DNA of 64,000 bases. It comes from Macrostomum lignano. Lineage: Eukaryota. Positions 24,807 through 53,800 of this stretch are shown in pieces. The position numbers and the translations under genes are program-made. The stretch spans positions 124,001-188,000 of the forward strand of contig NIVC01000376.1 of NCBI GenBank assembly GCA_002269645.1, read 5' to 3'. The notes beneath the pieces are model-generated. The model ran no database searches. It saw nothing but the letters and a program-made list of their open reading frames with translations, and was not told the origin of the DNA. Numbering within the stretch: the stretch's first letter is position 1; the number at the start of each line of letters is the position of its first letter.

Positions 24807-25625
24807 TTAGCGGCCGCCGCACACACAGACCTCGCTGACCACGCTGATCTCGTGCGGCGCCCAGCGGCACTCGAACTCGCCAGCCACCACGGACAGCCGC
24901 TCGGCGATGCTGCGCATTCGCTTGTTCCACCGCCTGCTCTTCTTCTTCTTCCTTTGCTCTGCCGAATTCCTCCGCTTCTGCTGCGCCTTCTTGTCCCGTC
25001 GTTGGCGTCGTCGCCTACGCAGTCGACGCAGTCGGCGCCGTAGCTGGCGCTTGAAGCTGTTCGAGCAGCGCCAGCGCAGCAGCTGCAGCCGGCGCGGCCG
25101 CCGTCGACGCTGGGCGCCGCAGCGCAGCAGGCCGGGCGGCCAACCGCAGGAGGCACCGCCGCCGCATTCGACGCTGCGAGCCCAGCGCGGCCAGACAGCG
25201 TCGCCCAGATCCGTCCAATTAGCCCGGCCCGGACAGGCGGCCAGGCGCGTCAGCCAGCCGCGGACGGACTGCGGCGAGGCGTTGACGGCGGCCAGCTGCC
25301 TGTTTAGCAGAGTCTGCTGCTCCGGCTGAAGCTCGACGAACTCGCCGCCAGGGTTTGCAACTCGCGGCCGGACGGACAGCCAGCCGAGCCGGAGGTCCTC
25401 TTGGCCGCCGCTGCCCAGCAGCTTGGTCAGCTTGCCGCGGCGCAGCTCTTTTTGACTCGGCTTCGGTGGCTGCGGCTTCGGCAGCTGCCGCTCCGGTGGC
25501 TGCTGCAGAGTCAGCCGGACCGACACCCCGCCTGTGCGGTCCGCATTTTGCAGCTGGGCGTTGGCGACGCGTGCAATTTGAGGCTGGCACAGCAGCAGGT
25601 GAACCAGAAGCAGCAGTAGATTCAT
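24807..25625 (-). CDS. nlg: Noggin-like protein (single exon, 272 aa) with a basic insertion in the cystine-knot domain
   Basis: Signal peptide; WLTRLAACPGRANWTDLGDAVWPRW...C...SCGWPPGL.C...LLRWRC...ECRW...VVSEVCVC aligns by eye with the noggin motif [25 protein letters not shown]...SCSVPEGM.C...VLRWRC...CGW...IISECKC. Confidence 0.9.
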   Translation of the reverse strand: MNLLLLLVHLLLCQPQIARVANAQLQNADRTGGVSVRLTLQQPPERQLPKPQPPKPSQKELRRGKLTKLLGSGGQEDLRLGWLSVRPRVANPGGEFVELQPEQQTLLNRQLAAVNASPQSVRGWLTRLAACPGRANWTDLGDAVWPRWARSVECGGGASCGWPPGLLRCGAQRRRRPRRLQLLRWRCSNSFKRQLRRRLRRLRRRRRQRRDKKAQQKRRNSAEQRKKKKSRRWNKRMRSIAERLSVVAGEFECRWAPHEISVVSEVCVCGGR

Positions 25626-26728: not shown

Positions 26729-29670
26729 ATGAAGATACACGCTGCGTCCCTGACTGTCGTCATTGCTGTCGTCTGCTTGTGGCAGCCTGTGTCTGCCACC
26801 ACCAGCTTCTGGAACAGCCAGTACTCAACTGCCGAGTTTGCTCAGTTCCGCTACAAGAACCAGTTTATGTTGTCGATCTTCCAGCATCTGACTAAGAACA
26901 ACACGTTTTACATCACGCCTCTGGTGCTGCTCGACCACCGGTCTGGCAGTCTGATGCACAATCCGTTTACCGAGTACTGGGAGCTTCGTTTCAGCGTCAT
27001 CATGTGGGACATGGAGTTGCAAGGTGAGTTTGAGCGGCTTTGTCGTTGTTTGACTTTCAGTTATCAGTAACAAGGACGCCAGCATCAAAGGCAAGAATGA
27101 AAGGCAAGAACTAATGACTCTGAATTAGTCGAATTTTCAGGTATCAGCTCATGCCTACAAACCAGGAGTACAAACGTTACTCTTCCATTTTTCAGCCAGT
27201 GTCTACAACTTCCTGACCACCGTCAAAGGCGTTCGCAACCCGGACGTGAAGCTGCTCCCGATGGAACGCGTCCGCTTCCAGTGGCAGTCGCGCAGCCGGC
27301 CCATCGTGAAAAAGCTCGTGATGGAAACCGAGTTCATCGCCACGCACCATCTGCCTCGGCTTCTCACTCTGACGTTCGCCTGCAAGAACCAGTCGCAGTG
27401 CGCCATGCTCAAAGACAAGGTCAGAGAGGATCCGGAGTCGCTCGACAGTTTAAAGCTGGACTGCTTCCTGACTGCGCAGAAGACGGCTAGTAAGACTGTG
27501 CGAGTCACCACTGACAACCTGATGCAGTCTACAACGTTCTCGAAGCTGCTAATGCTGCCTAAGGATGGAAATTACAGGTGAGGATAGCGCTTGATTTACA
27601 TCTCAAAAAGGGGCTCTCTGCTAGCAAATGAGTCGCCGATCGCATAAGGTCCAAAAGACTCTTGTAGCGCGACTTGTGTCCTATTCGAGGTGTGACCAAA
27701 TTAGTTAGGGATGATTTATTAGAACATTATAACATATACCATACTATGTAAATGTAAGTGCCTCACTATTAGAAAATTAAAGTGCAGAAGTGGAATGTCA
27801 GCACTGTATCTTTGTCAGTTCCTTGTCTTTGGTCCTGCAAGGTACATGCGAGCCGACGACTTCAACAACCTGGTTCAAGAGACCTACTCGTCGGTTCGGG
27901 CCACAACTATTCGATCCACCGAATACGTTGAAAAGTACGATGAGCTAAACATAGTACGCTTGATCGAGAGCGCGCTGAAGCAGGACGAGGTCATCACCAG
28001 CACTCTCAGCCAAACGCAGTGGCAGAGCGTCTTCTGGGATCCGACATTCGCTCGACCAGACAAAGTCGTAAGAGAGGCAGCCAAAACGTTCAAAAAAGAG
28101 GACTCTACAGGACAACTTCGGGTCGATAGGGCGTACCTGAGAAGCAACGAGGAGGCCAGGAAACTGTTTGGCTCAAGCAGGTCCCTCAGTGGCTCGGTTG
28201 GGGGCTCCTGGAGAGGTTTGAGTAGCGGTTCAATCAGCGGAGAGAGCTCCCGTAGGGCTGGTGACTCTATCAGCGGCAGCCTGTCGCACTTGAACGACCG
28301 CTACACAATGGACGAGCTCAACCGGAAGCTGTCTGACGCTAATCTGAACGTCGAATGGAACGGTGAACGGTTTATTGTGAGCCCGATGCGTCTGGTTCGA
28401 ATCAACGAGCAGGCCTACCGGTCCCGAAGGGAGCTGATCAGCAACAACATGCAGCTGACCATCTACCAGCAGAGCGCTTCGTTGAGCGTAATTGTTAGGC
28501 AGGAGCACAACGAGACCGCCATGATGAGGGAGACCGCCGCGACAGTGGGTGAGTTGGACGATGGGTTGGATATTTAACTACAATTTTAATAGCTATAATT
28601 AGGAAGTACCTGTAGCTACCTGTATAAATGAACATCATATCAACATTAAGCATTGTTGACCCGAAGTTTCAATTGAAGCTTGAATTTCCTGACCTTTACA
28701 TAGAATTGCTAGGCTCAGTTTCAAACCAATTAATTAATACTGCCATAATCCAATTAGTCAGCACTAATTTTCAACCTGTTTTAGAACCCGTTACTGCGGT
28801 ACATCATATGTACCTTTAAAATTCGAATATTAGACTTTGTCATAAACCCTAAATTGCTCCTGATGTCGCAGCTGTTATAAAATTTCTGTGGCAATCAAGC
28901 TGGTGTGGTTATAAACTTCCACAAACGATACCAGCTCATTAGGCACCAGAATGGAGCTTAAATCAAGGAGCACAGTAATGTTTTATAGACACTCATAAAA
29001 CGCAAGGCTTATGATTTCACGGTTCGGGGAAAAAGTAACGATTGGCTACCGAGATATAGGAAATTTTTTAAAATATTTATTGCTAAGCTGTCATCGGGGA
29101 ATCGCTGAAATGATGTGGCTCATCGGGGGGGGGGGGTTGTTTGCTGAGATACCAAAGGGCAATTTGGATTTGTTGATAGGCCTAACGTCAAAAGGAGAGT
29201 CAGGGTTCAGCCACGTCTTAAAGGAGGAGATGGCTTTTACTGGTCGGACAAATTATTTATTTCAATCGTTTAAGTAAGCATTAGATTTATTTGATATCCT
29301 ATGAGTACTTAGCTGTTCTCGTTAATCTTGTTAAACAATAAAGTTGGACTCTGAGCTTAGTTAATTATCATGAATCATCATAATTGCATAAAACATGCAC
29401 TAAACACATTCCCTCCACGCAGGCGCTTTCCCCACCGAGTACAGCTACTGCCTGCTGTCGAACGGCGGCAGCTGTCCTCCGGGATTCACCCGCAGCTCCG
29501 GCTTCATGAAGTCCATCAGGCTGGACACCAGCAGCAGCGGCATGATCAGCAAGGCCAAGCTGGGCGACTCGGCCATCAAGTGCCACAGTCCCGGAGACTC
29601 GGACGACTGCTCGTTCAGAGGCTGGGAGCCGTTCAAGGGCGAGCTGCATCTGCACGTTTGCTGCCGTTGA
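26729..29670 (+). CDS. Secreted 543-aa protein, paralog 1 (exons 26729-27023, 27196-27577, 27842-28548, 29423-29670); unknown N-terminal domain with Ser/Gly hairpin plus ApeC-like C-terminus
   Basis: All four exons join in frame (phases 1,2,1; total 1632 nt); signal peptide; same exon structure as paralog 2. The functional call is inference. Confidence 0.85.
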
Positions 29671-30225
29671 ATGTCGAGGAAGTCATTGCTAACCTTACTG
29701 CCGATTGTGACCATTTCAAAACTGGTCGCGGAAAGTTTTTCAATAATATTCAGTAGTAGAATATAAACAATGTGCCTGATTTGAATTTTATTCTGGCTCT
29801 GTCAAACAATTCTGTTTGTTACTCGTAATTGGTAGCTATGCGATTAATTTGTAATTTATTGTCAAATAAGTCTCATTGCATCCAACACATTTATTTGGCT
29901 GTAAATGGCAATAAATTAATTTAATTTAAAAAAAAACTCAGACAAGCACACCATCGTCTGAACTTGGCGAGCAATTCCGGCTATTGAAAATGTAAATCTT
30001 CGAATAGCGAATTATTTACCTAACGTTTCGCGCATTTTTTTTACTTTTCGGTACATCACGTGTGCTAGTTGTGCACACTGCTAAACCGCTGGTATTCAGA
30101 TAAATGTTCTGAAAATGCACCCAGGATTTTATGGATTTTATGGTGGGGGGACAATGCCAAGAATTCTACGAGCCGTACAGAGTCGATTCCTACATTTTTT
30201 AAAATCTGTGTTGTTAGCGCTCATT

Positions 30226-30830
30226 TTGGCACCGCAGGCACTCATTTTAGCGCCGCAGGCACTCATTTTGGCACCGCAGACACTCATTTTAGCGCCACAG
30301 GCACTCATTTTGGCACCGCAGACACTCATTTTAGCGCCACAGGCACTCATATCGGCGCCGCAGGCACTCATTTTGGCACCGCAGGCACTCATATCGGCGC
30401 CGCAGGGCACCGCAGGCACTCATATCGGCGCCGCAGGCACTCATATCGGCGCCGCAGGCACTCATTTTGGCACCGCAGACACTCATTTTAGCGCCGCAGG
30501 CACTCATTTTGGCACCGCAGGCACTCATTTTGGCACCGCAGGCACTCATTTTGGCACCGCAGACACTCATTTTGGCACCGCAGACACTCATTTTAGCGCC
30601 GCAGGCACTCATTTTAGCGCCGCAGGCACTCATTTTGGCACCGCAGGCACTCATTTTGGCACCGCAGGCACTCATTTTGGCACCGCAGGCACTCATTTTG
30701 GCACCGCAGGCACTCATATCGGCGCCGCAGGCACTCATTTTGGCACCGCAGGCACTCATTTTGGCACCGCAGGCACTCATATCGGCGCCGCAGGCACTCA
30801 TTTTGGCACCGCAGACACTCATTTTAGCGT
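30226..30830. repeat. 21-bp minisatellite (GGCACCGCAGGCACTCATTTT)
   Basis: Direct. Confidence 0.95.
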
Positions 30831-31250
30831 TGGCCTTAGTGGAAGTCTTTTGCCACTAATGACACCATTTATAAAATATGCAGGATTTGCAAAATAGTTA
30901 GTTTTTTACAAAAAAACTCCAATCGCACTACTGCTGTTAGCGAACGCGGCAGAGCATGTGATTCGCGATCTTATCAGTCTGCCCAAATCATTTGATCACC
31001 TGCGCCTCTCCGCTCGTGCGGCCTGGCCTTATCAGTTGTTTTTGTGAAATTTTCAGTGCACGCCAGGCTTCCAGATCCAAGTGCTTTGTCTAAACAGAAA
31101 CTGAATTTCGACTGTGTGCGCACCCAAATACAGTGCAAGTCAAGCAAGCAAACTTCTAAATTGGCAGGTATTTCCGTTTCACCTTGATAACCGTCTTGGT
31201 TAAGCAGCTCTGCAGCCAAGTTGGGCCAAAATTACACGGATACGAAAATC

Positions 31251-34200
31251 ATGGCAAAGCACTTGGCAAGTTCAGTCGCTTTGATTTTGTCAGCTGCCAT
31301 CTGCCTGTGGCAGCCGGCGAACTGCGTCAGCTTCTGGGACAGTCAGTACTCGACTAGTGAGTTCGCTCAGTTCCGCTACAAGAACCAGTTTACCGTGTCC
31401 ATCTTCCAGCACCTTACCAAGAACAGGACATTCTATATCACGCCTCTGGTGCTGCTGGATCACACATCCGGCTCGCTGACTTACAATGACTTCACAGAGT
31501 TCTGGGAACTCCGCTTCGACGTCATCATGTGGGATAGCGAGATGCAGAGTAAGAAAAATGCTTTCCATAATATAAAATAAGACCCTTTTAAATATTTTAA
31601 AGGTTTAAAGGGATTTTTGGACACCTTTGCAGCAAAATAGTACACGTATGTGAATGGTGTATAAGTAGCTGTGTGATTGAGTCTGCCGGGATCCTGCAAA
31701 CTGCACTGACTGAGGGCTTAAAAAACCAAGAACTAACCTCATCGAACATCCTGTACCAATTGCCAACCCTCGCGAACATTGCAGCCAGCGTCGTCGACTT
31801 TCTAACCCGGGTGAAAAAGGTCGCCAGACCGGATGTGCGGCTGCTGCCTCTGGAGAAGGTCCGCTTTCAATGGCAATCTCGCAACCGACCCTTGAAGAAG
31901 AACATCATCTTGGAGAACGAGTTCTTGGCCACCAATCACCTATGGGATCCGTTGAAACTAATTTTTGCTTGCAAAAACGAGACTTACTGCGCCAGACTGC
32001 TGACGAAAGTCAGAAACAACCCGAGGTCTCTCGACAGCCTCGTTCTGGACTGCTTCTTGACCGCACAGAAATCTGTTAGCAAAACTGTGACAGTCACTAC
32101 TGACAATCTCATGGAGACAACTGCCTTTTCGAAGCTGATGCTGCTGCCTCCTGATGGAAATTACAGGTTATTATGTCACGTGTAGTCATATTGTATGTAA
32201 TTAAAGATGCCAGGTCCTGAATTAACAATGACTGTTATTTCTCATTGATCAAAAAGTGGCACTCAAAACTGGAGTCGTGTAGGCCTCTACTGATTAGTAG
32301 AACTACTCTCGTAAATGTATCAACGCCATCGAAGCTAATTGAGTACAATACTTCCTAACGCAGGTATATGCGAGCCGACGACTTCAACAACCTGGTGCAA
32401 GAGACCTACTCGTCGGTTCGGGCCACCACAATCCGGTCGACTGAATACGTTGAAAAGAAAGACGAATTCGACATCATGCGTCTCATCGAGGGCGCTTTGA
32501 AGCAAGACGAAATCTACGCCAACAGACTAAGCGAGACCAAGTGGCGCAGCGTCTTCTGGGACCCGGTGTACGCACGTCCGGATCGCGTTGTGCACGAAGC
32601 CTCAAGAACCTTTAAAAAGGACGAGTCCACGGGTTTAATGAAGATCGACAGGGATTACCTGAGAAGCAGCGACGAGGCTAAGAAACTATTCGGCAGCACA
32701 TCGAGCACCAGCTGGTCAGCTGGCGGTTCGGCTTTCCTTTTCTCTGCCAAAGTTGGCTCGAGCAGGACAGTGACGGATAGGGGCTCGGAGAGCTCCAGAC
32801 GGTCTTATCAGCGAGACTCTTTCACAGGCGAGGAGCTCAACAATAAGCTATCCGAACGCAACCTGAATGTCCAGTGGAATGGCGAGCGATTCGAAGTGCG
32901 CCCACTGCGGCTGGTTCGAATCAACGAGCAGTCGTTCCGCTCCCGTCGAGAGCTGGTCAGCAACAACATGCAGCTTACAATCTACCAGCAGACTACCACG
33001 TTCAAAGTGATCACTGTACCGGAGCGAAACAGCAGCTTGTTGCTTAGGGATCTCGCCAGTGCTGGTAAGCAATTAGTACTCCTCGATTGCTACACGTCAG
33101 TATCTTATTTAGTTGAACTAGAACACGATGAAAATAATTGATTTACATTCGATGGTTTTTCTCAAGGTTTACCTAGTTTACCATATGAAAACATGCACTT
33201 ATAACAAATTATTTCTAGTCAAGCAGCAGCATCACGAGACATGGCATCGGAGAACTTAAATCCCATTTAGCCTTAGTACAGCTCAGTACTCCCATTGAGA
33301 CATAGCACCTCAGTAAATGTAATTACGCTTTTTAAAGTTATAAATGTCAACGAGCCTTTAGTAGTCAGAATCCATCTCAGCTAGCAAACGCAGCCCACTA
33401 CAACAGCTCCAAGGTTTTAAATGTCATGGGAAAAGGCAAACAAAGAACTAAAACGATAAAGTTTGCTTTCAGCCCCAAAAGTGCTTCGATTAGGTTCCCT
33501 GATCGTAACCAAATACTATTGAAGACGAAGCCCTTGACTTACTTGACTTAGCTGCAGGGCTGTCCCGGAGGGGACACAGCGGGAAGGCGCGGGCGCCCAT
33601 TCCGCTAGTCCCTGAACGGCCGACGCGTCGCTATGGACGGAGGGTTGGCGCCGCCCAGGGAGGTCCCCCAGTGTCGCCAGCAGCTATAGTGCTCTCTGGA
33701 AAGGAGAGTTCAGCCCTGCGGGTGGCCCGAAGGTAGCGCATGAGCTGATTAAAGTTTTCGGGTTTGCACGCTTCAGTAATAGATGTGTGTGGCCCGAGGT
33801 AAGTGAGTCTGGCCCGCGTGAAGGCGGGACAGATGCTGACGAAATGCTCAGCGGTTTCGTCACCTGAGTTGCAGAAACTACAGGTGGCGTTGGTGGCGTT
33901 GCCCTGCAGGTACTGGTGCCTGGAGAAGCAGCCGTGACCAGAGAGGGTCATGGTGGCAGCCCGGATGTCTCTGCGCGAGAGGCGCAAGAGGAGCTTCCGG
34001 AGCTGGTGAGAGGGCTGAGGGACAGCGCCTCTGGATTGCCTGCAGTTCGTGCGGTTCGCCCAAGTCGAGCGGTGCTGAGTCCTGATCCACGCTTTGATGC
34101 GCGAGTCGATGACACAGCCAGGAACCGGGACAAGAGGTTCGGGGCCGAGAGAGGAGCCGGAGGCACCAACTTTTGCAAGGGTGTCAGCCAACTCATTTCC

Positions 34201-35313
34201 TCGGATCCCCACATGCCCCGGAACCCACTTAAGGGTAATTTTGTTGGCGGAACCCAACACGTTGAGGAGTTTGATACAGTCGAGGACTGTAGCAGAGTTG
34301 GTGCTGCAGCCACTGATGGCGTGCAAGGCAGCTTGGCTGTCCGAATGGAAAATGATGTTCTTACCAGTAACGCCAGTGGCGAGAAGCTCTGCAGTGCAGG
34401 AGCTGATGGCCAGAACTTCATTTTGGAAAACACTGGAATTGACCCCAGTGTATTGAGCGTGGGTAGCGATGACCCTCCCGTTCAGAAAGATTCCAACACC
34501 AAAGCCGGTGTTGGCTGACTGCTTAGAACCGTCGGTGTAGCAATGAAGCTCACCAGGGTTCCATTGGTCATTGATGTTATCGCGCGAGTCGATAGCTACG
34601 GAGTAGCGCTGTCTCAGGTTGAGCGTTGAGGCAATGCCATCGGTGAAGACGCGATTGGCCTGACACTCGTTGAGAAAGTTGAGGCACAGATCGCTATGCG
34701 GGACAAGGTTCCGCTTAGCAGGTGCTCTCATGTAAATGAATTTGACGCCGGCATCAATTAGACGCCGCGTCGTTCTAGCCGCCTCACCCCTGATGAAGAG
34801 GTCAAGAGGCGGAAGATTAAGGAAGGCCCCATGCCAGCAAAGGGCGTGGACCTGGTGGCAAGACGAAGCCCAATTGATTGTTAATCTACAGCTGCCCCCG
34901 AAGTAAGTTCTTCCAGGCGGTCCTTGAACGCAAAATTGTAAGATGGAATGTATGCAGGTACTAAATTCTATCTCAAGCCATTCCTTTCATAAAACTATTC
35001 TATCTGAATCTGCGAAATAAATACAACAATGTTCCACCATAACAAATCTCTTGCATACGCTTCAGGAGAATTCCCCAGCAAGTACAGCTACTGCCTGCTG
35101 TCGAACGGCGGCAGCTGTCCTCCGGGCTTCACCCGCAGCTCCGGCTTCATGAAGTCCATCAGGCTGGACACCAGCAGCAGCGGCATGATCAGCAAGGCCA
35201 AGCTGGGCGACTCGGCCATCAAGTGCCACAGTCCCGGAGACTCGGACGACTGCTCGTTCAGAGGCTGGGAGCCGTTCAAGGGCGAGCTGCATCTGCACGT
35301 TTGCTGCCGTTGA
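31251..35313 (+). CDS. Secreted 542-aa protein, paralog 2 (exons 31251-31548, 31785-32166, 32364-33064, 35066-35313)
   Basis: In-frame GT-AG splicing with the same phases as paralog 1 (total 1629 nt); clear protein similarity throughout. Confidence 0.85.
33534..34859 (-). mobile_element. 5'-truncated non-LTR retrotransposon with RNase H and C-terminal zinc-knuckle-like region (I/R1/Loa-type), in intron 3 of paralog 2
   Basis: ORF 33631-34731 with YTDGS, AI...HSDSQAAL and WVPGH.GI.GNELAD; 12-bp TSD AAGACGAAGCCC at 33522-33533 and 34860-34871; short AAGTC-type tandem 3' tail. Confidence 0.9.
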
Positions 35314-37091
35314 ATGTCGAGGAAGCCATCGCTATCCTTACGACTCTCTCCATTACATGCGCATATTTCAAAAACTGCTAGCGGAAAACTCTGCTCCCAA
35401 CACTTTCCGAGTTAATTTTCGTATCTCTACTGATTCAAAGATATAAAGGTAAAACGCTTTATAACTAACTAATCAAGGACTTTATTTTCGACATTTTACG
35501 AGCGTATATTTATATGATTAATAATTTTCAATAATGCATGCAATTTCTATCCAACTCTAAATTATGACTCCTCCTTGGTGGAATGTGATTCGAAATACAA
35601 ATTCGTAAAATTTTATTCGAGTTTCGATCAGACTTGTTCAAGGCACCAGTTATTAATAGCAAATGCTAGGCTGCGTGCCATCAGAAGGTTGCGCAATGAA
35701 CTCATTTTTATGATGCTATACAGGATACGTAAGAACTAATAGTGATGAATAGATAAATGTATCTGTAGCTCGTAATGATATTAACTTCTTAACTTCATTC
35801 AGAATTGGAGAATAATTCGATCGAAACTTGAATGACTTGCTCAGTGGAGCGAGTTCATGTCAATTCTGCAGCCGAAGCTGAAATCTAATTGACATTCGAT
35901 TAAAGCTGAGATTGCAATCGAATTCAACCCATTGAATCCACGCATGTCAATTCTCGGTTTGTTCTTCTTCTGAGGACCTCTAGAGCAGTTAGCGATTGCT
36001 AAATCGAAAAGTCATTGAACTCAAAGAGAGTTTTGTTAGCTATAGCTTCCAAGTAGGCATTTCCAGGGACTTGCTGCACTTACACTTTGCTGCACCCTGC
36101 GATGCTGCATAGAGCCTTCATCGGAGCTTTGGGTTGGTTAGTTAGCGTGCGCGGCTGGGCTTAGGGCTCTGCTGCAAGTCAAAAGCAACAGTCCACCTGC
36201 AGAGAGCGACTCTCCGAGACGTCTTACGAGGGCCAACCCTCAAGGCACAGAAAGTGTATACATTCCTGACGATCAGAAAATCAGGGCCGCTGTATATCAT
36301 ACACCCTGTTGTGAGCGTGTGTACATGTATGCAGTGCTCATCAGGAGTCGGATGTCTGGGCAGAATTGCAGTCAAATCAGCTGGTTGCGGGACGATGTCG
36401 ACAGCGTTGCATCTTCCAGGCCGATGAGCTGCTCTGTTGCCGAGCTTGGGTTGGTACTCAGTGCCAATTGCCCCGGCTCCAAATGATGGCGCCGTTTTTA
36501 TCAAACATGTTTATACGAGTGCAAACTATAGGAAGTCTTCCTAGACTAAACTAACAGCAGCGAAAATAATCCTTGATTAACACACTTGATTAACACCCAA
36601 CCTCTGGATGCCGAGATTCCCTTGATTGATGAGAGATTGGAGGCAGGTGTTAATCAAGGCTTACTGTCGTTGCTTACCCTTTTCAATTTAAAGGATATAA
36701 GAGGGTACAAAGATAAATTAAGGGATTTCTTTGTTTGATAAACGTGACATTGTCATTTTACAGCCAAAAAAAACTGCGCGAAAAATTTTAAGCTTGTATC
36801 TCGTTAGTGCATTTTGTAGGGAAAAGCGGCCTTTTATTAAAATTTCTATTAAAATAAAGACTCTAAGTCTCGTTTAAAGAGATATCTTCCGGGCGTTTCT
36901 TGGTTGAATTTGCTCGTCTTTTCAAGCTAGCTACTTACTAGAACAGTAGCTTGAATGCTTATCAATTCTAACGTCTTTCGTAACATTCTCAATTTATTGC
37001 AGCGATTTTGACAGTTTCCAATTCAAAAGCCACCACCAGAGCTGTAAATTTTTAATATTCGACTGTGTTTTTACTCGTAACAACGATTTCT

Positions 37092-38215: not shown

Positions 38216-38682
38216 GATACTGGTAATTCAGTAGTCAGCAATACATCCTATTGGAATGCTGTCTCACTAATGACACATGTCGCAAATCAATAAATCATTC
38301 ATATCTCACTGCAGCTTTGAGAGTTAATGTCTGCTGAGGAGGCTAATCACCAATAACTCTAATGAGTGTTATTAAGAGCTTGAAAAATAAATGAGCCGCA
38401 GGCGCCGACACTGGGCGCCATCGAAACTTACTAATGTCCAGACATGCTGATGGAAATTTGTCTTGCTCAGCGAATACTTTTTTGTTTTTAAGGTTCGAAG
38501 GCTGGATGCAAAATTCTCTTGCATGCCTGCCGCCATTCTGGGGTAGAAGTATCTCAGTTGAGTTTCCTCCTTCGGTTCTTATTGGATGCTGCTTGAAGAG
38601 GGATATTTCTTTTTTGTGTACCAGCCAATGCCATGAGGGAAGTGGAATTGGAACCCCTGAATCCTCAATGAGGGCTGATGTT

Positions 38683-39775
38683 CTTCCTGAACCTTCAGTG
38701 AGAGTTGCTACTCCCTTTCCTGAACCTTCAGTGAGAGTTGCTACTCCCTTTCCTGAACCTTCAATGGGAGTTGCTACTCCCTTTCCTGAACCTTCAATGG
38801 GAGTTGCTACTCCCTTTCCTGAACCTTCAATGGGAGTTGCTACTCCCTTTCCTGAACCTTCAATGGGAGTTGCTACTCCCTTTCCTGAACCTTCAGTGAG
38901 AGTTGCTACTCCCTTTCCTGAACCTTCAATGGGAGTTGCTACTCCCTTTCCTGAACCTTCAGTGGGGGCTGCTACTTCCTTTCCTGAACCTTCAGTGAGG
39001 GCTGCTACTTCCTTTCCTGAACCTTCAGTGGGGGCAGTGGGGGCTGCTACTCCCTTTCCTGAACCTTCAATGGGAGTTGCTACTTCCTTTCCTGAACCTT
39101 CAGTGGGGGCTGCTACTTCCTTTCCTGAACCTTCAGTGGGGGCTGCTACTTCCTTTCCTGAACCTTCAGTGAGGGCTGCTACTTCCTTTCCTGAACCTTC
39201 AATGGGAGTTGCTACTCCCTTTCCTGAACCTTCAGTGAGAGTTGCTACTCCCTTTCCTGAACCTTCAGTGAGAGTTGCTACTCCCTTTCCTGAACCTTCA
39301 ATGGGAGTTGCTACTCCCTTTCCTGAACCTTCAGTGAGAGTTGCTACTCCCTTTCCTGAACCTTCAATGGGAGTTGCTACTCCCTTTCCTGAACCTTCAG
39401 GGAGAGTTGCTACTCCCTTTCCTGAACCTTCAATGGGAGTTGCTACTTCCTTTCCTGAACCTTCAGTGAGAGTTGCTACTCCCTTTCCTGAACCTTCAAT
39501 GGGAGTTGCTACTCCCTTTCCTGAACCTTCAATGGGAGTTGCTACTTCCTTTCCTGAACCTTCAGTGGGGGCTGCTACTTCCTTTCCTGAACCTTCAGTG
39601 GGGGCTGCTACTTCCTTTCCTGAACCTTCAGTGGGGGCTGCTACTTCCTTTCCTGAACCTTCAGTGGGGGCTGCTACTTCCTTTCCTGAACCTTCAATGG
39701 GAGTTGCTACTTCCTTTCCTGAACCTTCAGTGAGAGTTGCTACTCCCTTTCCTGAACCTTCAGTGGGGGCTGCTA
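38683..39775. repeat. 33-bp minisatellite (TTCCTGAACCTTCAGTGAGAGTTGCTACTCCCT variants)
   Basis: Direct; translates as PEPSVRVATPF repeats. Confidence 0.95.
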
Positions 39776-40302
39776 CCCTCCGAAACTTGCAGTTGGTGGT
39801 TATGCCAATTAATTATTAAAAAATTTCCTTTTTCAAAACCAGCCCAGTTTCAAAGGAAGATCCTTTCTATATTCGAAAACCGACAGAAAAGTGCAAAAAC
39901 AGAGAAGCTTGGGGGCCATTTGTTTTTCCGCTATAATTAAAATATTTATGACAAAATTTTAGTTAATTGAATTGCATTAAAGCTCTACCAGCTTTCGAGT
40001 ATTTCTCGTCTATTTTTTTAGACTCAGATGCCCCTTCAAAGAGCTGCTTCGCGGTGCTATTCATAATTCATCATTTTTCTCCGTTTCCAACCATCATTGA
40101 AGGCTCTCGAAGCAGGGCCCGAGAGAAGTTCGGGTTGGGAAAAAAGACTGCCTCTTTGAAAAACGTGACGTCACAACTGGATAAATATGGCTTAGAATGA
40201 TGACGTCACAGCACTGCCTTCCGATGTGGTAGCACCTATGGAGTATTTGCAATGAAAGGCACCACATCTTCAGACTCTAATGTCTGTTTGCCTGTCCGCG
40301 TG

Positions 40303-42189: not shown

Positions 42190-43689
42190 ATGAACGAATT
42201 CCTGCAAAATCAGCTCACATCGCGCAATGCTTTGATTGGAGCGGGTGCTCTGGCTGCGGCCTACACGTTGCGGTCTCTGTACCGCTCCTCGCAGCTGCCG
42301 CCCGGGCCGCTGGGCCTTCCGCTCCTCGGCCGACTGCCCTGGCTGGACACAGACCACTTCAACGAGAGCGAGGAGGCAATGCGCCAGAAGTATGGACCGA
42401 TTTACTCGTTCCGGGCCGGACAGAGGCTGATGATTGTGGTGTCCTCCTACGAGATGCTGAAGGAGATGCTGAAGGACGACATGTTCTCGGGTAGGTTGTG
42501 GCCGCCACAAGCCGCCGAGCTGTCAGATGGTTGCGGCATCATCTTTAGCGAAGGTAAAACCTGGAGCGAGCAGCGTCGAGTTGGACTGCGCATGCTGCGC
42601 GAGTTTGGTTTCGGTAAGAATGAGTCGCTTGCGTTGATTAACGAGGAGGTCGCAGCCATCCTGGCTTCCATTGAGAGCTGCAACAGCGAGGTGGATTCAT
42701 CCCGCCTGTTTAGCGATCTGGCTAATGGCGTGATTGCTATGCTGGTGTTCGGTAAGCGCTATGCGAACGAAAACCCAAATTATGAGAGCTTCCTGATCAA
42801 TGCTAAAAGATTGCTGAACGACAGTCTGGCGAGCAGTCTTACTCTGCTATTTCCGACCTTTGCTCCGCTGCTAAAGAGGCTGTCCATCACACAGCAGGCT
42901 TCAACAGCTACGCTGGCAATGCATCAATTCTTCCAGGAAGAGATCAAGAAAAAGGAGGCCGAGCTTACTGACCCGAACGCTGAGCCACTCTGCATATGTG
43001 ACGCCTACATTCAAGAAAGACGTCGGTATGAAGCCAAAGGAGACTTCTACACCCACAGGCCGTTCCATCTGGTGCGCATCTGCATGGAGATGTTCATCGC
43101 CGGCACCGACACCACCTCGAAGTCGATGGAGTGGCTGTTGGCTCACATGTGCCTGTACCCGCAAGTGCAGGCGAAGGTGCAGCAGGAATTGGACGAAGTC
43201 GTGGGACGCGAGCGTCGACCTCAGATCAACGACAGGCCACAGCTGCACTACATGCAGGCAGTTATTGATGAGAGCTTGAGATACGCCTCGCTTGCATTCA
43301 ATAGTCTGACGCATCGAGCAATGAAAGATACAACGTTCCGCGGCTACAGAATACCTGCGGATGCTATAATAGTTCCATTTGTATACGGCGCTCATCGCGA
43401 CGCCTCAATCTGGGAGAAACCGGATCAGTTTTATCCTGAGCATTTCCTTGACTGCGAAGGCAAGTACTCGCCATCAAAATATTTGATCCCATTTTCGATC
43501 GGCCGAAGGATTTGTCCAGGTGAATCTTTGGCTAGACTGGAGATCTACATGGCATTCGCAGCCATCATGCAGAAGTACAGTGTGACACTTGCAGCCTCTT
43601 GCAAAGATAAAGCTGCTGACGTTGAGCGCGGATTGACTACGACACCAAGGCAACCAGGCTGGCACAAGCTGCACTTTGTAAAGCGATGA
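42190..43689 (+). CDS. Cytochrome P450, clan-2-like, intronless (499 aa)
   Basis: N-terminal anchor, PPGPLGLP hinge, WSEQRR C-helix, AGTDTT I-helix, ESLR (ExxR), PEHF, FSIGRRICPG heme motif. Confidence 0.97.
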   Translation: MNEFLQNQLTSRNALIGAGALAAAYTLRSLYRSSQLPPGPLGLPLLGRLPWLDTDHFNESEEAMRQKYGPIYSFRAGQRLMIVVSSYEMLKEMLKDDMFSGRLWPPQAAELSDGCGIIFSEGKTWSEQRRVGLRMLREFGFGKNESLALINEEVAAILASIESCNSEVDSSRLFSDLANGVIAMLVFGKRYANENPNYESFLINAKRLLNDSLASSLTLLFPTFAPLLKRLSITQQASTATLAMHQFFQEEIKKKEAELTDPNAEPLCICDAYIQERRRYEAKGDFYTHRPFHLVRICMEMFIAGTDTTSKSMEWLLAHMCLYPQVQAKVQQELDEVVGRERRPQINDRPQLHYMQAVIDESLRYASLAFNSLTHRAMKDTTFRGYRIPADAIIVPFVYGAHRDASIWEKPDQFYPEHFLDCEGKYSPSKYLIPFSIGRRICPGESLARLEIYMAFAAIMQKYSVTLAASCKDKAADVERGLTTTPRQPGWHKLHFVKR

Positions 43690-50800: not shown

Positions 50801-53800
50801 CTTGGCATGCCGTTGCCCGCAGTTGGGAACCGCTGCTGTGAGTTGCTGCTGAGACCGCAGGCTCCCTTCCCTTCTTCCTCTCCTCTCGATTCCTGTCAAT
50901 TTCCCGGTTATTTTCAGTTTTGTCTTTAGCATTCCATTTGCTTTTTCTCTCCTTTTCTATCTTCCACGCTTCATCATCATTGCAATTTTGTGAGTCTGAG
51001 ATAAAAATTGCACACAATGCTGGCATTCTCCTCTTGTCATGGGATTTCAACTAGGTGACTAGAATATGTTATGTAACATTGATTTTACTTGTTGCTATTC
51101 AATATTTGAATAGGATTAGCATATAGGACTTTTCAGTGAATGGGAATTGGGATAATGTCTATCATAATTAGGATCGTGTCTATCGGAATTGGAGTAATGT
51201 CTAAAGGAATTGGGATTGTGTCTATGGGAATTGGGATAATGTCTATGGGAATTGGAATATTGTCTATGGGAATTGGGATAATGTCTATGGTAATTAGGAT
51301 CATGTCTATGAGAATTGGGATAATGTCTATGGGAATTGGGATAATGTCTATCGTTATTGGGATCGTGTCTATTGGAATAAAGATAGTGTCTATGGGAATA
51401 AGGATAATGTCTGTGGGAATTGGGATAGTGTCTATGGGAACTGGAATAGTGTCTATGGGGATTGGGATAATGTCTATGGGAATGGGGATAATGTCTTTGG
51501 GAATTGGGATAGTGTCTTTGGGAATTGGGATAGTGTCTATGGGAATCGGGATAGTGTCTATGGGAATCGGGTCATCGGGATAGTGTCTATGGGAATAGGA
51601 TAATGTCTATGGGAATAGGATAATGTCTATGGGAATTGGGAAAGTGTCTATGGGAATCGGGATAATGTCTATGGGAATAGGATAATGTCTATGGGAATTG
51701 GGAAAGTGTCTCTGGGAATCGGGATAGTGTCTATGGGAATCGGGATAATGTCTATGGGAATAAGATAATGTCTATGGGAATTGGGATAGTGTCTATGGGA
51801 ATTGGGAAAGTGTCTATGGGAATTGGAATAGTGTCAATGGGAATCGGGATAGTGTCTATGGGAATCGCGATAGTGTCTATGGGAATCGGGATAATGTCTA
51901 TGGGAATAATATAATGTCTATGGGAATTGGGATAGTGTCTATGGGAATTAAGAAAGTGTCTATGGGAATTGGAAGTGTCAATGGGAATCGGGATAGTGTC
52001 TATGGGAATCGGGATAGTGTCTATGGGAATCGGGATAGTGTCTGTGGGAATCGGGATAATGTCTATGGAATCGGGATAGTGTCTATGGGAATTGGGAAAG
52101 TGTCTATGGGAATTGGAATAGTGTTTTTTTAGAGTTATAGATAATAGAGCTATTTTATTTTGACTCTTGCAGTTCACTAACTCTGTTACTTTCTTACGGC
52201 TACGAGCCGGATTTAAATATACAATCGTATGCACTTTTATCTGTCAAACCTGACAAACCTATTCCGACTCACTCTGACACAACAAATGGCGACGAGGACG
52301 ACAATGGAATCTTTTAACTGCAGCAATCCGCGCAGCTGGGACGAGTACGAAGAAAGACTTGAATTTTACCTGGCGGCAAACAAAATTACGGATGAGGCGC
52401 TAAAGAGAGCTACTCTGCTCACGTTGATTGGTGAGGAAGCATTCTCAATATTACGGAATTCAATCGCTCCTCAGAAGTGCAAGGATAAGACCTACGATGA
52501 GCTACTTAAAGCACTCAAATCTCAGTTTGCGCCCACAATGAGTTCGATTGCACAAAGATTTGTGTTTGCCCAACGGAAGCAAAGGGATGGTGAAACAGTT
52601 GCCGAATTCGTGGTAAGTCTACGAAGTCTCAGTGCAAGCTGTAATTTCGACACCTTCTTGGATCAGGCCCTCCGAGACGCTTTTGTTTTCGGTCTCCGAG
52701 ACGAGCAAATGCTGAACAGACTGCTTAAATCATTAGAAGATAAGTCTTCATTTAAGGACGCAGTTGAAGCAGCTCAGGTGATTGAAAATGCGTGCAAAAA
52801 TGCACGAAGCATTCAAGGCCTTGCAAGCGATGTGAAGAGATTGGACACAAGAAAAGTGAAGCCTCAGACACATGAGCCATCCACATTTCGAGGCCCTACT
52901 GGAACTGCTGCATTTCCATTCAAGTCGCGCCCAACTAATAAGTCAGCAAATCAACGGAAGTGCTATCGGTGTTCCGCTTTGGACCACTTGGCAAACACTT
53001 GTTCGCACCGCAACAAACAATGCAAGAAGTGCGGTAAGGTAGGCCATTTGGGAATAGCTTGCAGATCAACAGTACCATCAAAAGGATTTCATAATAAGCA
53101 AATCGTAGACATCACACCCCTCCCTTTCCTCGATTCGATCATTGAGAGAAATCTTTGCAAGATTTGGTTTACCACGAGTGCTTCATTCTGACAATGGTTC
53201 TCCATTCACGTCATATCAATTTAAGGATTTTTTAAGACGGAATGGTATTCGACACTCTTTGAGTAGTCCTGCTCACCCAAGGTCAAATGGATTGGCTGAA
53301 AATATGGTAAAGCAAGTAAAAAAGGCTTTAAAAGCATCAGGCGAAGGCGACATACTAAAGCAGCTAGCAAACTTCCTGTTCCGGGCCAGAGCTACACCTC
53401 ACAGCACAATTGGAAAGACTCCATCGGAACTTCTGTTTGGTAGAAATCTGAGAACAAAACTGTAGTTGCTCTTTCCCGATGCGGAATCAAAGGTCTTGTG
53501 CGCCCAAGACAAACAAAAAGAGCGACATGACACTAAACTAACGGCGTCAGTGGACTTTTTCGTTGGAGAGAGAGTTCTGGTTCAGGATTTACGAAGAGGA
53601 AAAGACAGATGGGCTCTTGGAACTATTCTGAGACGTACAGCCCCGTTGACTTACTCTGTTCGAGTTGGTGATTTACTTAGGAAACGTCACGCGGATCAGC
53701 TTCTGAAGACAGGACAACGACTACAAGAGACTATTGAGCCAAAGCTGATATCGAATGATTCTAAAGTGAAGGATTCTGTTGAGACAGAACAATATGCTTC

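Follow-up and report, generated by a model that had tools for sequence, protein, structure and literature searches.

Proteins that carry the C-terminal domain of apextrin (ApeC) are the closest described systems to the genes considered here. By its published definition the ApeC domain comprises about 200 residues, in which eight cysteines are conserved and the DXED motif occurs three times, and in its full form it binds peptidoglycan and agglutinates bacteria (PMC9585378, PMC8361754). ApeC-containing proteins (ACPs) of many architectures are already known, including apextrin (MACPF-ApeC) and the short ACPs of amphioxus and molluscs. A stretch of 64,000 nucleotides from Macrostomum lignano (positions 124,001 to 188,000 of contig NIVC01000376.1, assembly GCA_002269645.1; hereafter the window) contains two tandem genes, gene 1 and gene 2, whose products resemble ACPs in their predicted secretion, their N-terminal non-lectin region and their C-terminal cysteine-rich module. 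Two features of this pair are new: an ApeC module reduced to one sub-unit, and a widespread, unannotated N-terminal domain (N-domain) of about 420 residues without a solved relative.

The gene models were rebuilt by listing the splice sites that leave the reading frame open, and all introns are GT-AG. Gene 1 (26729..29670, + strand) has four exons (26729-27023, 27196-27577, 27842-28548 and 29423-29670) and encodes 543 residues, while gene 2 (31251..35313, + strand) has four exons (31251-31548, 31785-32166, 32364-33064 and 35066-35313) and encodes 542; their introns share equal positions and phases. The gene 1 product is reported as 100% identical over 100% of its length to the annotated M. lignano protein BOX15_Mlig026829g5, and the gene 2 product is near-identical to the annotated 542-residue paralog BOX15_Mlig026829g2, which is 70% identical to gene 1. 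The independent annotation of M. lignano, in which both matches are labelled hypothetical proteins, agrees with the two rebuilt models, and the pair of four-exon genes described in a first-pass annotation made from the sequence alone stands. Scanning a six-frame translation of the window with the family profile described below found two copies only, gene 1 and gene 2. Each protein begins with a putative signal peptide, also proposed in the first-pass annotation and judged here by eye from the sequence rather than by a predictor. In gene 1 it spans residues 1-23 (MKIHAASLTVVIAVVCLWQPVSA; 26729..26797, +), where a positively charged start leads into a hydrophobic core and then a cleavage motif of small residues (VSA); in gene 2 it spans residues 1-25 (MAKHLASSVALILSAAICLWQPANC; 31251..31325, +).

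Most of each protein is a large domain lying outside the named families, as had been suspected from the sequence. Pfam searches with the gene 1 and gene 2 proteins gave no match at E<=1, NCBIfam and PADLOC searches returned nothing for the N-domain, and searches of PDB sequences gave no match with gene 1 and none at E<=10 with the family profile. A profile seeded with the two proteins and run against 1.84 billion representatives recovered 373 proteins at E<=1e-3, 160 of them at E<=1e-10; all 373 matches are confined to residues ~25-450 and none extends to the tail. The named members are a WSC fusion encoded at a different M. lignano locus and proteins of the acoel Convolutriloba, the nematodes Plectus and Acrobeloides, the tardigrades Paramacrobiotus and Hypsibius, the rotifer Didymodactylos and Daphnia pulicaria, all labelled uncharacterized; paralog numbers are large in the tardigrades. 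Among 71 relatives, the N-domain had no Pfam match in any. These profile matches define a real, old and unannotated domain family, of about 420 residues, found across several animal phyla. Contigs that carry metagenome-derived members yielded neither taxonomic nor context information. A word-index search with the gene products recovered only M. lignano proteins, one with the family alignment recovered three proteins, again all from M. lignano, and one with the tail alignment recovered no relatives; in the two alignment searches low-complexity words probably drowned the signal, or the queries were too short for a database of this size. A single narrow pattern derived from five close members, run against GTDB genomes and IMG/VR, recovered no relatives, which is a weak negative. 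Pfam at E<=10 did not bear out the UniRef label "VWFD domain-containing" given to a variant model, P0002.

The N-domain consists of two conserved lobes. The gene 1 N-lobe (residues ~24-335; 26798..28169, + strand, introns included) includes the almost invariant residues D232, W286, W291, R297, P298 and D299, which together with G400 and F403 are the most conserved positions of the family; D232, R297, D299, W286 and W291 are each at least 95% conserved, and G400 and F403 more than 90%. The C-lobe occupies residues 382-444 in both proteins (gene 1, 28308..28496, +; gene 2, 32827..33015, +). The string VEWNGERF, quoted in the first-pass annotation, is present in the gene 1 C-lobe at 28350-28373 (residues 396-403), and gene 2 has VQWNGERF at 32869-32892. 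Both genes carry the family motifs W-x-SVFW-x5-RPD and W-x-G-E-[KR]-F, which are 72-99% conserved, while N306 and K406 of the two proteins differ from the family consensus. The other conserved positions are mostly aromatic, proline, glycine or hydrophobic residues, and the overall pattern looks structural more than catalytic.

Structure prediction of the N-domain depended on the depth of the alignment. With the two paralogs only, AlphaFold returned a model with a predicted local distance difference test score (pLDDT) of 29.7, which is unusable; with a 108-sequence family alignment the mean pLDDT rose to 79.5, with a predicted template modeling score (pTM) of 0.65 and 293 residues at pLDDT >=90. 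The predicted fold is mixed alpha/beta, with an N-lobe at ~30-335 (pLDDT mostly >90) and a small C-lobe at ~382-445 (pLDDT ~89-96 over the gene 1 C-lobe), and pLDDT falls below 50 in a Ser/Gly-rich segment at 340-373. A Foldseek comparison of this model with the PDB gave no match (best E 0.34, template modeling score (TM) <0.11), and there were no pore formers among the 50 PDB matches listed. The sole significant structural match came from predicted viral structures (BFVD), where the uncharacterized protein A0A7S7YF07 of Medusavirus stheno T3 aligned with E 2.4e-15 and probability 1.00 over 478 columns. The viral protein differs in being 417 residues long and just 14% identical, and the TM-score is low (0.28-0.35), which would imply either a different relative placement of the lobes or a poor viral model. 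The match hints that the family extends to amoebae or their viruses. With some 380 confidently modeled residues lacking a PDB match, the N-domain is a good target for structure determination.

Unlike the N-terminal region of apextrin, the N-domain is not a MACPF domain, and it is unrelated to the N-terminal regions of the oyster protein CgACP1 or of BgACP1. Neither the two proteins nor the 71 relatives had a Pfam match to MACPF/CDC, and Foldseek found no such match in the PDB. A hidden MACPF-like helix-to-hairpin element was considered and rejected: the family-averaged two-residue periodicity fell on predicted strands, with a single weak window on a helix.

The cysteine-rich tail of gene 1 (residues 468-543; 29440..29667, +) has six cysteines, and that of gene 2 (residues 467-542; 35083..35310, +) is identical to it in protein sequence. 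The string YCLL..GGSCPPGF...CCR is present in both tails, as had been noted at first reading. Nineteen of 159 retrieved family sequences end in CC, most sharing a cysteine tail ended by CC[KR], and the shared tail frame is W-P-x-G-x-Y-C ... C-P-x-G-F ... C-C-[KR]. Four cysteines are invariant across 11 family tails; bacterial ApeC-like domains likewise have four cysteines only (PMC8361754). For comparison with genuine ApeC domains we used CgACP1 and BgACP1, taken from Supplementary Figure 2 of PMC9585378. The ApeC domains of both were read as three sub-units, of which the middle one (SWPRGNYCIMRYGSSCPSGF...INYCCR) has the tail frame, with the shared framework WPxGxYC-x5-CPxGF...CC[RK]. An hhalign comparison of the family tail alignment with the CgACP1/BgACP1 ApeC alignment gave a probability of 96.2% (E 2.1e-9), and a hidden Markov model of the tail, run with hmmsearch, aligned end-to-end with CgACP1 residues 86-145 at 27.9 bits and matched BgACP1 at 26.6 bits.

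Matches to the Pfam ApeC profile itself (PF16977) were weaker. Genes 1 and 2 had none, whether the whole protein (E<=1) or the isolated tail (E<=10) was searched, and the tails of three homologs scored 13.7-24.2 bits (E 3.5e-5 to 0.06), below the gathering score of 26.5 bits and covering only profile positions 72-96 of 208. Searching PDB sequences with the tail profile gave no match and found no solved ApeC structure; to our knowledge none exists. The tail also differs from the ApeC domain in its length (about 75 versus 200 residues), in its cysteines (six, four of them conserved in the family, versus eight) and in lacking DXED and the first and third sub-units. Judged by homology, then, the tail corresponds to a single central, four-cysteine ApeC sub-unit, while under the published definition it does not count as an ApeC domain. 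The ApeC-like character first proposed for this tail is thus retained for the central sub-unit and withdrawn for the full domain. Such a mini-ApeC shows that ApeC is reducible to one four-cysteine sub-unit and could help to locate the glycan-binding part of the domain. ACPs have been reported from flatworms, tardigrades and nematodes (PMC8361754), phyla in which the N-domain family also occurs.

In the 71 relatives the N-domain is always N-terminal, while the C-terminus varies and often follows a coiled coil. The C-terminal modules recognized by Pfam are Xlink (five members), phage tail Collar (four), C1q (two), SRCR (two), an AIG1-type GTPase (two), C-type lectin and WSC, and mini-ApeC is a further module among the relatives. 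The swapped C-terminal modules point to a design of targeting module plus effector, and a constant N-terminal module combined with interchangeable recognition heads is how innate-immune effectors and lectin-targeted toxins are built. To this extent the lectin-targeted effector envisaged in the first-pass annotation fits the relatives, but the pore formation attached to it is unsupported by structure prediction. Three proteins of the tardigrade Paramacrobiotus metropolitanus extend the range of architectures. P0024 and P0043 lack a signal peptide; in them the N-domain and its loop precede an AIG1/septin-like GTPase, after which come a coiled coil and a region rich in Cys and His, and they probably represent a cytosolic version of the module. 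P0093 has a membrane anchor at its N-terminus, carries a mucin-like, Thr/Pro/Lys-rich insertion of about 550 residues where other members have the loop, and ends with an Xlink domain. Collectin/C1q-type pattern-recognition proteins offer a parallel, as many relatives likewise have a coiled coil followed by a C1q, C-type lectin, tail-collar or mini-ApeC head. The N-domain family differs from them in having a large, conserved globular domain at the N-terminus where they have a collagen or Cys-rich oligomerization segment, and genes 1 and 2, unlike the collectin/C1q type, lack the coiled coil, their C-lobe and tail being separated by only some 20 residues.

The N-lobe and C-lobe are separated by a Ser/Gly-rich variable loop, which thus lies inside the conserved region rather than between the domain and the tail. 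In gene 1 it spans residues 336-381 (28170..28307, +) and has a pLDDT below 50; in gene 2 it spans residues 337-381 (32692..32826, +) and includes a hydrophobic patch, AFLFSAKV (hydrophobic-cluster z 3.4). The loop is best read as exposed and flexible, possibly serving as a cleavage site or as a membrane or ligand contact. The string ESSRR is common to the otherwise fast-evolving loops of all three M. lignano paralogs (28250-28264 in gene 1, the matching position in gene 2, and P0004) and, on its residues, may be a dibasic processing site.

The first-pass annotation had assigned this loop a specific role, that of the membrane-inserting stem of a beta-pore-forming toxin (beta-PFT). By this account the loop refolds into an amphipathic beta-hairpin and joins an oligomeric transmembrane barrel once the lectin tail has bound its target. 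Lectin-coupled beta-PFTs (the aerolysin-type natterin, Dln1 and biomphalysin, with anthrax protective antigen (PA) and the B components of binary toxins) are like the present family in their modular design with a targeting domain, animal pore formers typically couple an effector to a lectin, and many N-domain family members have a segment of about 45 residues, rich in Ser, Thr and Gly with a hydrophobic Gly-rich center, that resembles theirs. Nearly all family members have the loop at the matching position; its median length is about 42 residues, and Ser, Thr, Gly, Ala and Asn are abundant in it. In many members its center carries a hydrophobic Gly-rich motif (e.g., FLGFGG, FFGLF, WGFGG or ILGMLGIGG), which resembles the tip of the anthrax PA 2b2-2b3 membrane-insertion loop. 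The loops of genes 1 and 2, however, contain Arg and few hydrophobic residues, and loop length in the family is variable: 21-173 residues in the alignment, rising to the insertion in P0093 and falling to near absence in P0055.

The alternation of small and hydrophobic residues that had prompted the stem assignment is only partly borne out. In a binary polar/non-polar test the gene 1 loop gives a borderline signal (z 1.9, p 0.06) and the gene 2 loop none (z -0.2), although it is in gene 2 that the string originally quoted, STSSTSWSAGGSAFLFSAKVGSSRTVT, is located; two known stems used as controls gave z 2.3 and 2.9. Alternation is modestly enriched across the family, with a mean z of 0.69 and 16% of members at p<=0.05 compared with 0.30 and 6% for control segments. 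The binary test replaced a Kyte-Doolittle beta-moment test of the loop that lacked power, since it failed to single out known stems. A pre-stem loop can be disordered in a monomer model, and the low pLDDT of the loop is therefore compatible with a stem, but a disordered loop with no match to a solved structure is also the outcome that the first-pass annotation itself had named as refuting its proposal. The confident model finds no fold match in the PDB, as the sequence finds none in Pfam or the PDB to the beta-PFT families (aerolysin/ETX-MTX2, leukocidin, PA/binary toxin B) or to any other, and its mixed alpha/beta character differs from the elongated beta structure of a pore former. The loop is not a demonstrated beta-barrel stem, and we regard a beta-PFT mechanism as improbable.

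We infer secretion, glycan binding by the tail, a role in defense and the effector chemistry of these proteins from their architecture and from published ApeC biochemistry. On this basis genes 1 and 2 may encode secreted, glycan-targeted surface or innate defense proteins, a reading that we prefer tentatively, at slightly less than an even chance, and that is favored by the modular combination of a constant N-terminal module with interchangeable recognition heads. The proteins would be secreted, the mini-ApeC tail would dock them onto a carbohydrate surface, and the conserved N-terminal domain would provide an effector or assembly activity; the best guess for the surface is a microbial cell wall, because full ApeC domains bind peptidoglycan. 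Several observations weigh against this. The tail, at about 75 residues, represents one of three ApeC sub-units and contains no D-x-E-D sequence, the nearest string being DSDD, so that glycan binding would be an extrapolation from the full domain; its AlphaFold model is also poor, with pLDDT below 50 over residues 489-533. The tardigrade members that lack a signal peptide and are fused to a GTPase show that the N-domain is not limited to extracellular use. Literature searches, both by locus tag and for any earlier account of such a family, gave no match. Finally, the Xlink and WSC partners and the original apextrin fit a role in the extracellular matrix as well.

That last point leads to the view of these proteins as structural components of extracellular matrix, mucus or adhesive, in which the N-domain would serve in assembly or as a scaffold, with the tail anchoring it to the animal's own surface-coat glycans. 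Xlink (a hyaluronan-type binding module) and WSC, the mucin-like insertion and membrane anchoring of P0093, and a set of conserved residues that is mostly aromatic, Pro, Gly or hydrophobic and without a catalytic-looking set are all consistent with it; apextrin has been described in the apical extracellular matrix (PMC8361754), with a comparable role proposed for the original sea-urchin apextrin. The C1q, SRCR, C-type lectin and tail-collar partners and the cytosolic GTPase fusions nevertheless fit recognition or defense better, and the large paralog numbers of tardigrades are more usual in defense families, leaving a matrix role rather unlikely. An enzyme with a carbohydrate-binding tail, in which D232, R297 and D299 would be catalytic on a polysaccharide or cell-wall substrate, is less probable still. 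The near-invariance of these residues and of W286 and W291 agrees with it, as do C-terminal modules of the carbohydrate-binding type, and carbohydrate-active enzymes often contain low-complexity Ser/Gly linkers. However, there is no enzyme-family match by sequence or fold, the placement of the Ser/Gly loop between the conserved lobes is not that of a linker joining domain to tail, the conserved Asp residues lie at helix starts in the model, consistent with structural capping, and both proteins are off consensus at N306 and K406.

The secreted defense reading can be carried further, to an N-domain that is a cytotoxic or membrane-attack effector of new fold, conserved across acoels, flatworms, nematodes, tardigrades, rotifers and Daphnia and shared with a giant virus. 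Such an effector would be secreted with recognition heads (lectin, C1q, SRCR or mini-ApeC) or cytosolic with an immune-type GTPase, and the variable loop would act as its activation or membrane-insertion element; we consider this extended version speculative and put its likelihood low. If the working model is true, the N-domain would be a new effector domain of invertebrate innate immunity, modular with many recognition heads and, in tardigrades, joined to GTPases. The family is present in the model animals Macrostomum, Hypsibius and Daphnia, where RNA interference or knockout is possible.

The two genes are, by their divergence, old tandem paralogs. Their products are 70% identical, and in both lobes the ratio of nonsynonymous to synonymous divergence (dN/dS) is ~0.19 at a synonymous divergence (dS) of ~1.2, so that both copies are being maintained under purifying selection. 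The Ser/Gly loop has a dN/dS of 0.49, compared with 0.19 in the flanking lobes. The tail stands apart from this pattern, with a dS of 0.029 versus ~1.2 elsewhere. Exon 4 and about 30 nucleotides of the 3' untranslated region (35066..35343, +, shared with 29423-29700) are ~98% identical in nucleotide sequence, compared with ~71% in the remaining coding sequence. This near-identity marks a short gene-conversion tract, which keeps the two tails identical. Intron 3 is 2001 bp long in gene 2 and 874 bp in gene 1, a difference explained by insertion of a retroelement fragment: at 33631-34731 on the - strand, in a GC-rich block, gene 2 intron 3 contains a 366-residue open reading frame (ORF) whose product matches RNase H (E 1.2e-11), an antisense insertion of such a fragment.

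Several further features lie in the window. A minisatellite of about 28 copies of the 21-bp unit CTCATTTTGGCACCGCAGGCA occupies 30220-30825, between gene 1 and gene 2. Just upstream of gene 1, in a block of 58% GC, is a 272-residue ORF with a Noggin domain match (24807-25625, -; E 1.7e-7). Downstream of gene 2, a 461-residue ORF at 38434-39819 (+) is composed nearly entirely of an 11-residue repeat (VATPFPEPSMG/VR), equivalent to a 33-nucleotide tandem repeat; it has a weak, sub-threshold Mucin-like match and may not be a gene. An intronless ORF of 499 residues at 42190-43689 (+) encodes a cytochrome P450 (Pfam p450, E 1.3e-101), and a retrotransposon gag-like ORF with a Retrotrans_gag match and a sub-threshold zinc-knuckle match is found at 52229-53191 (+).

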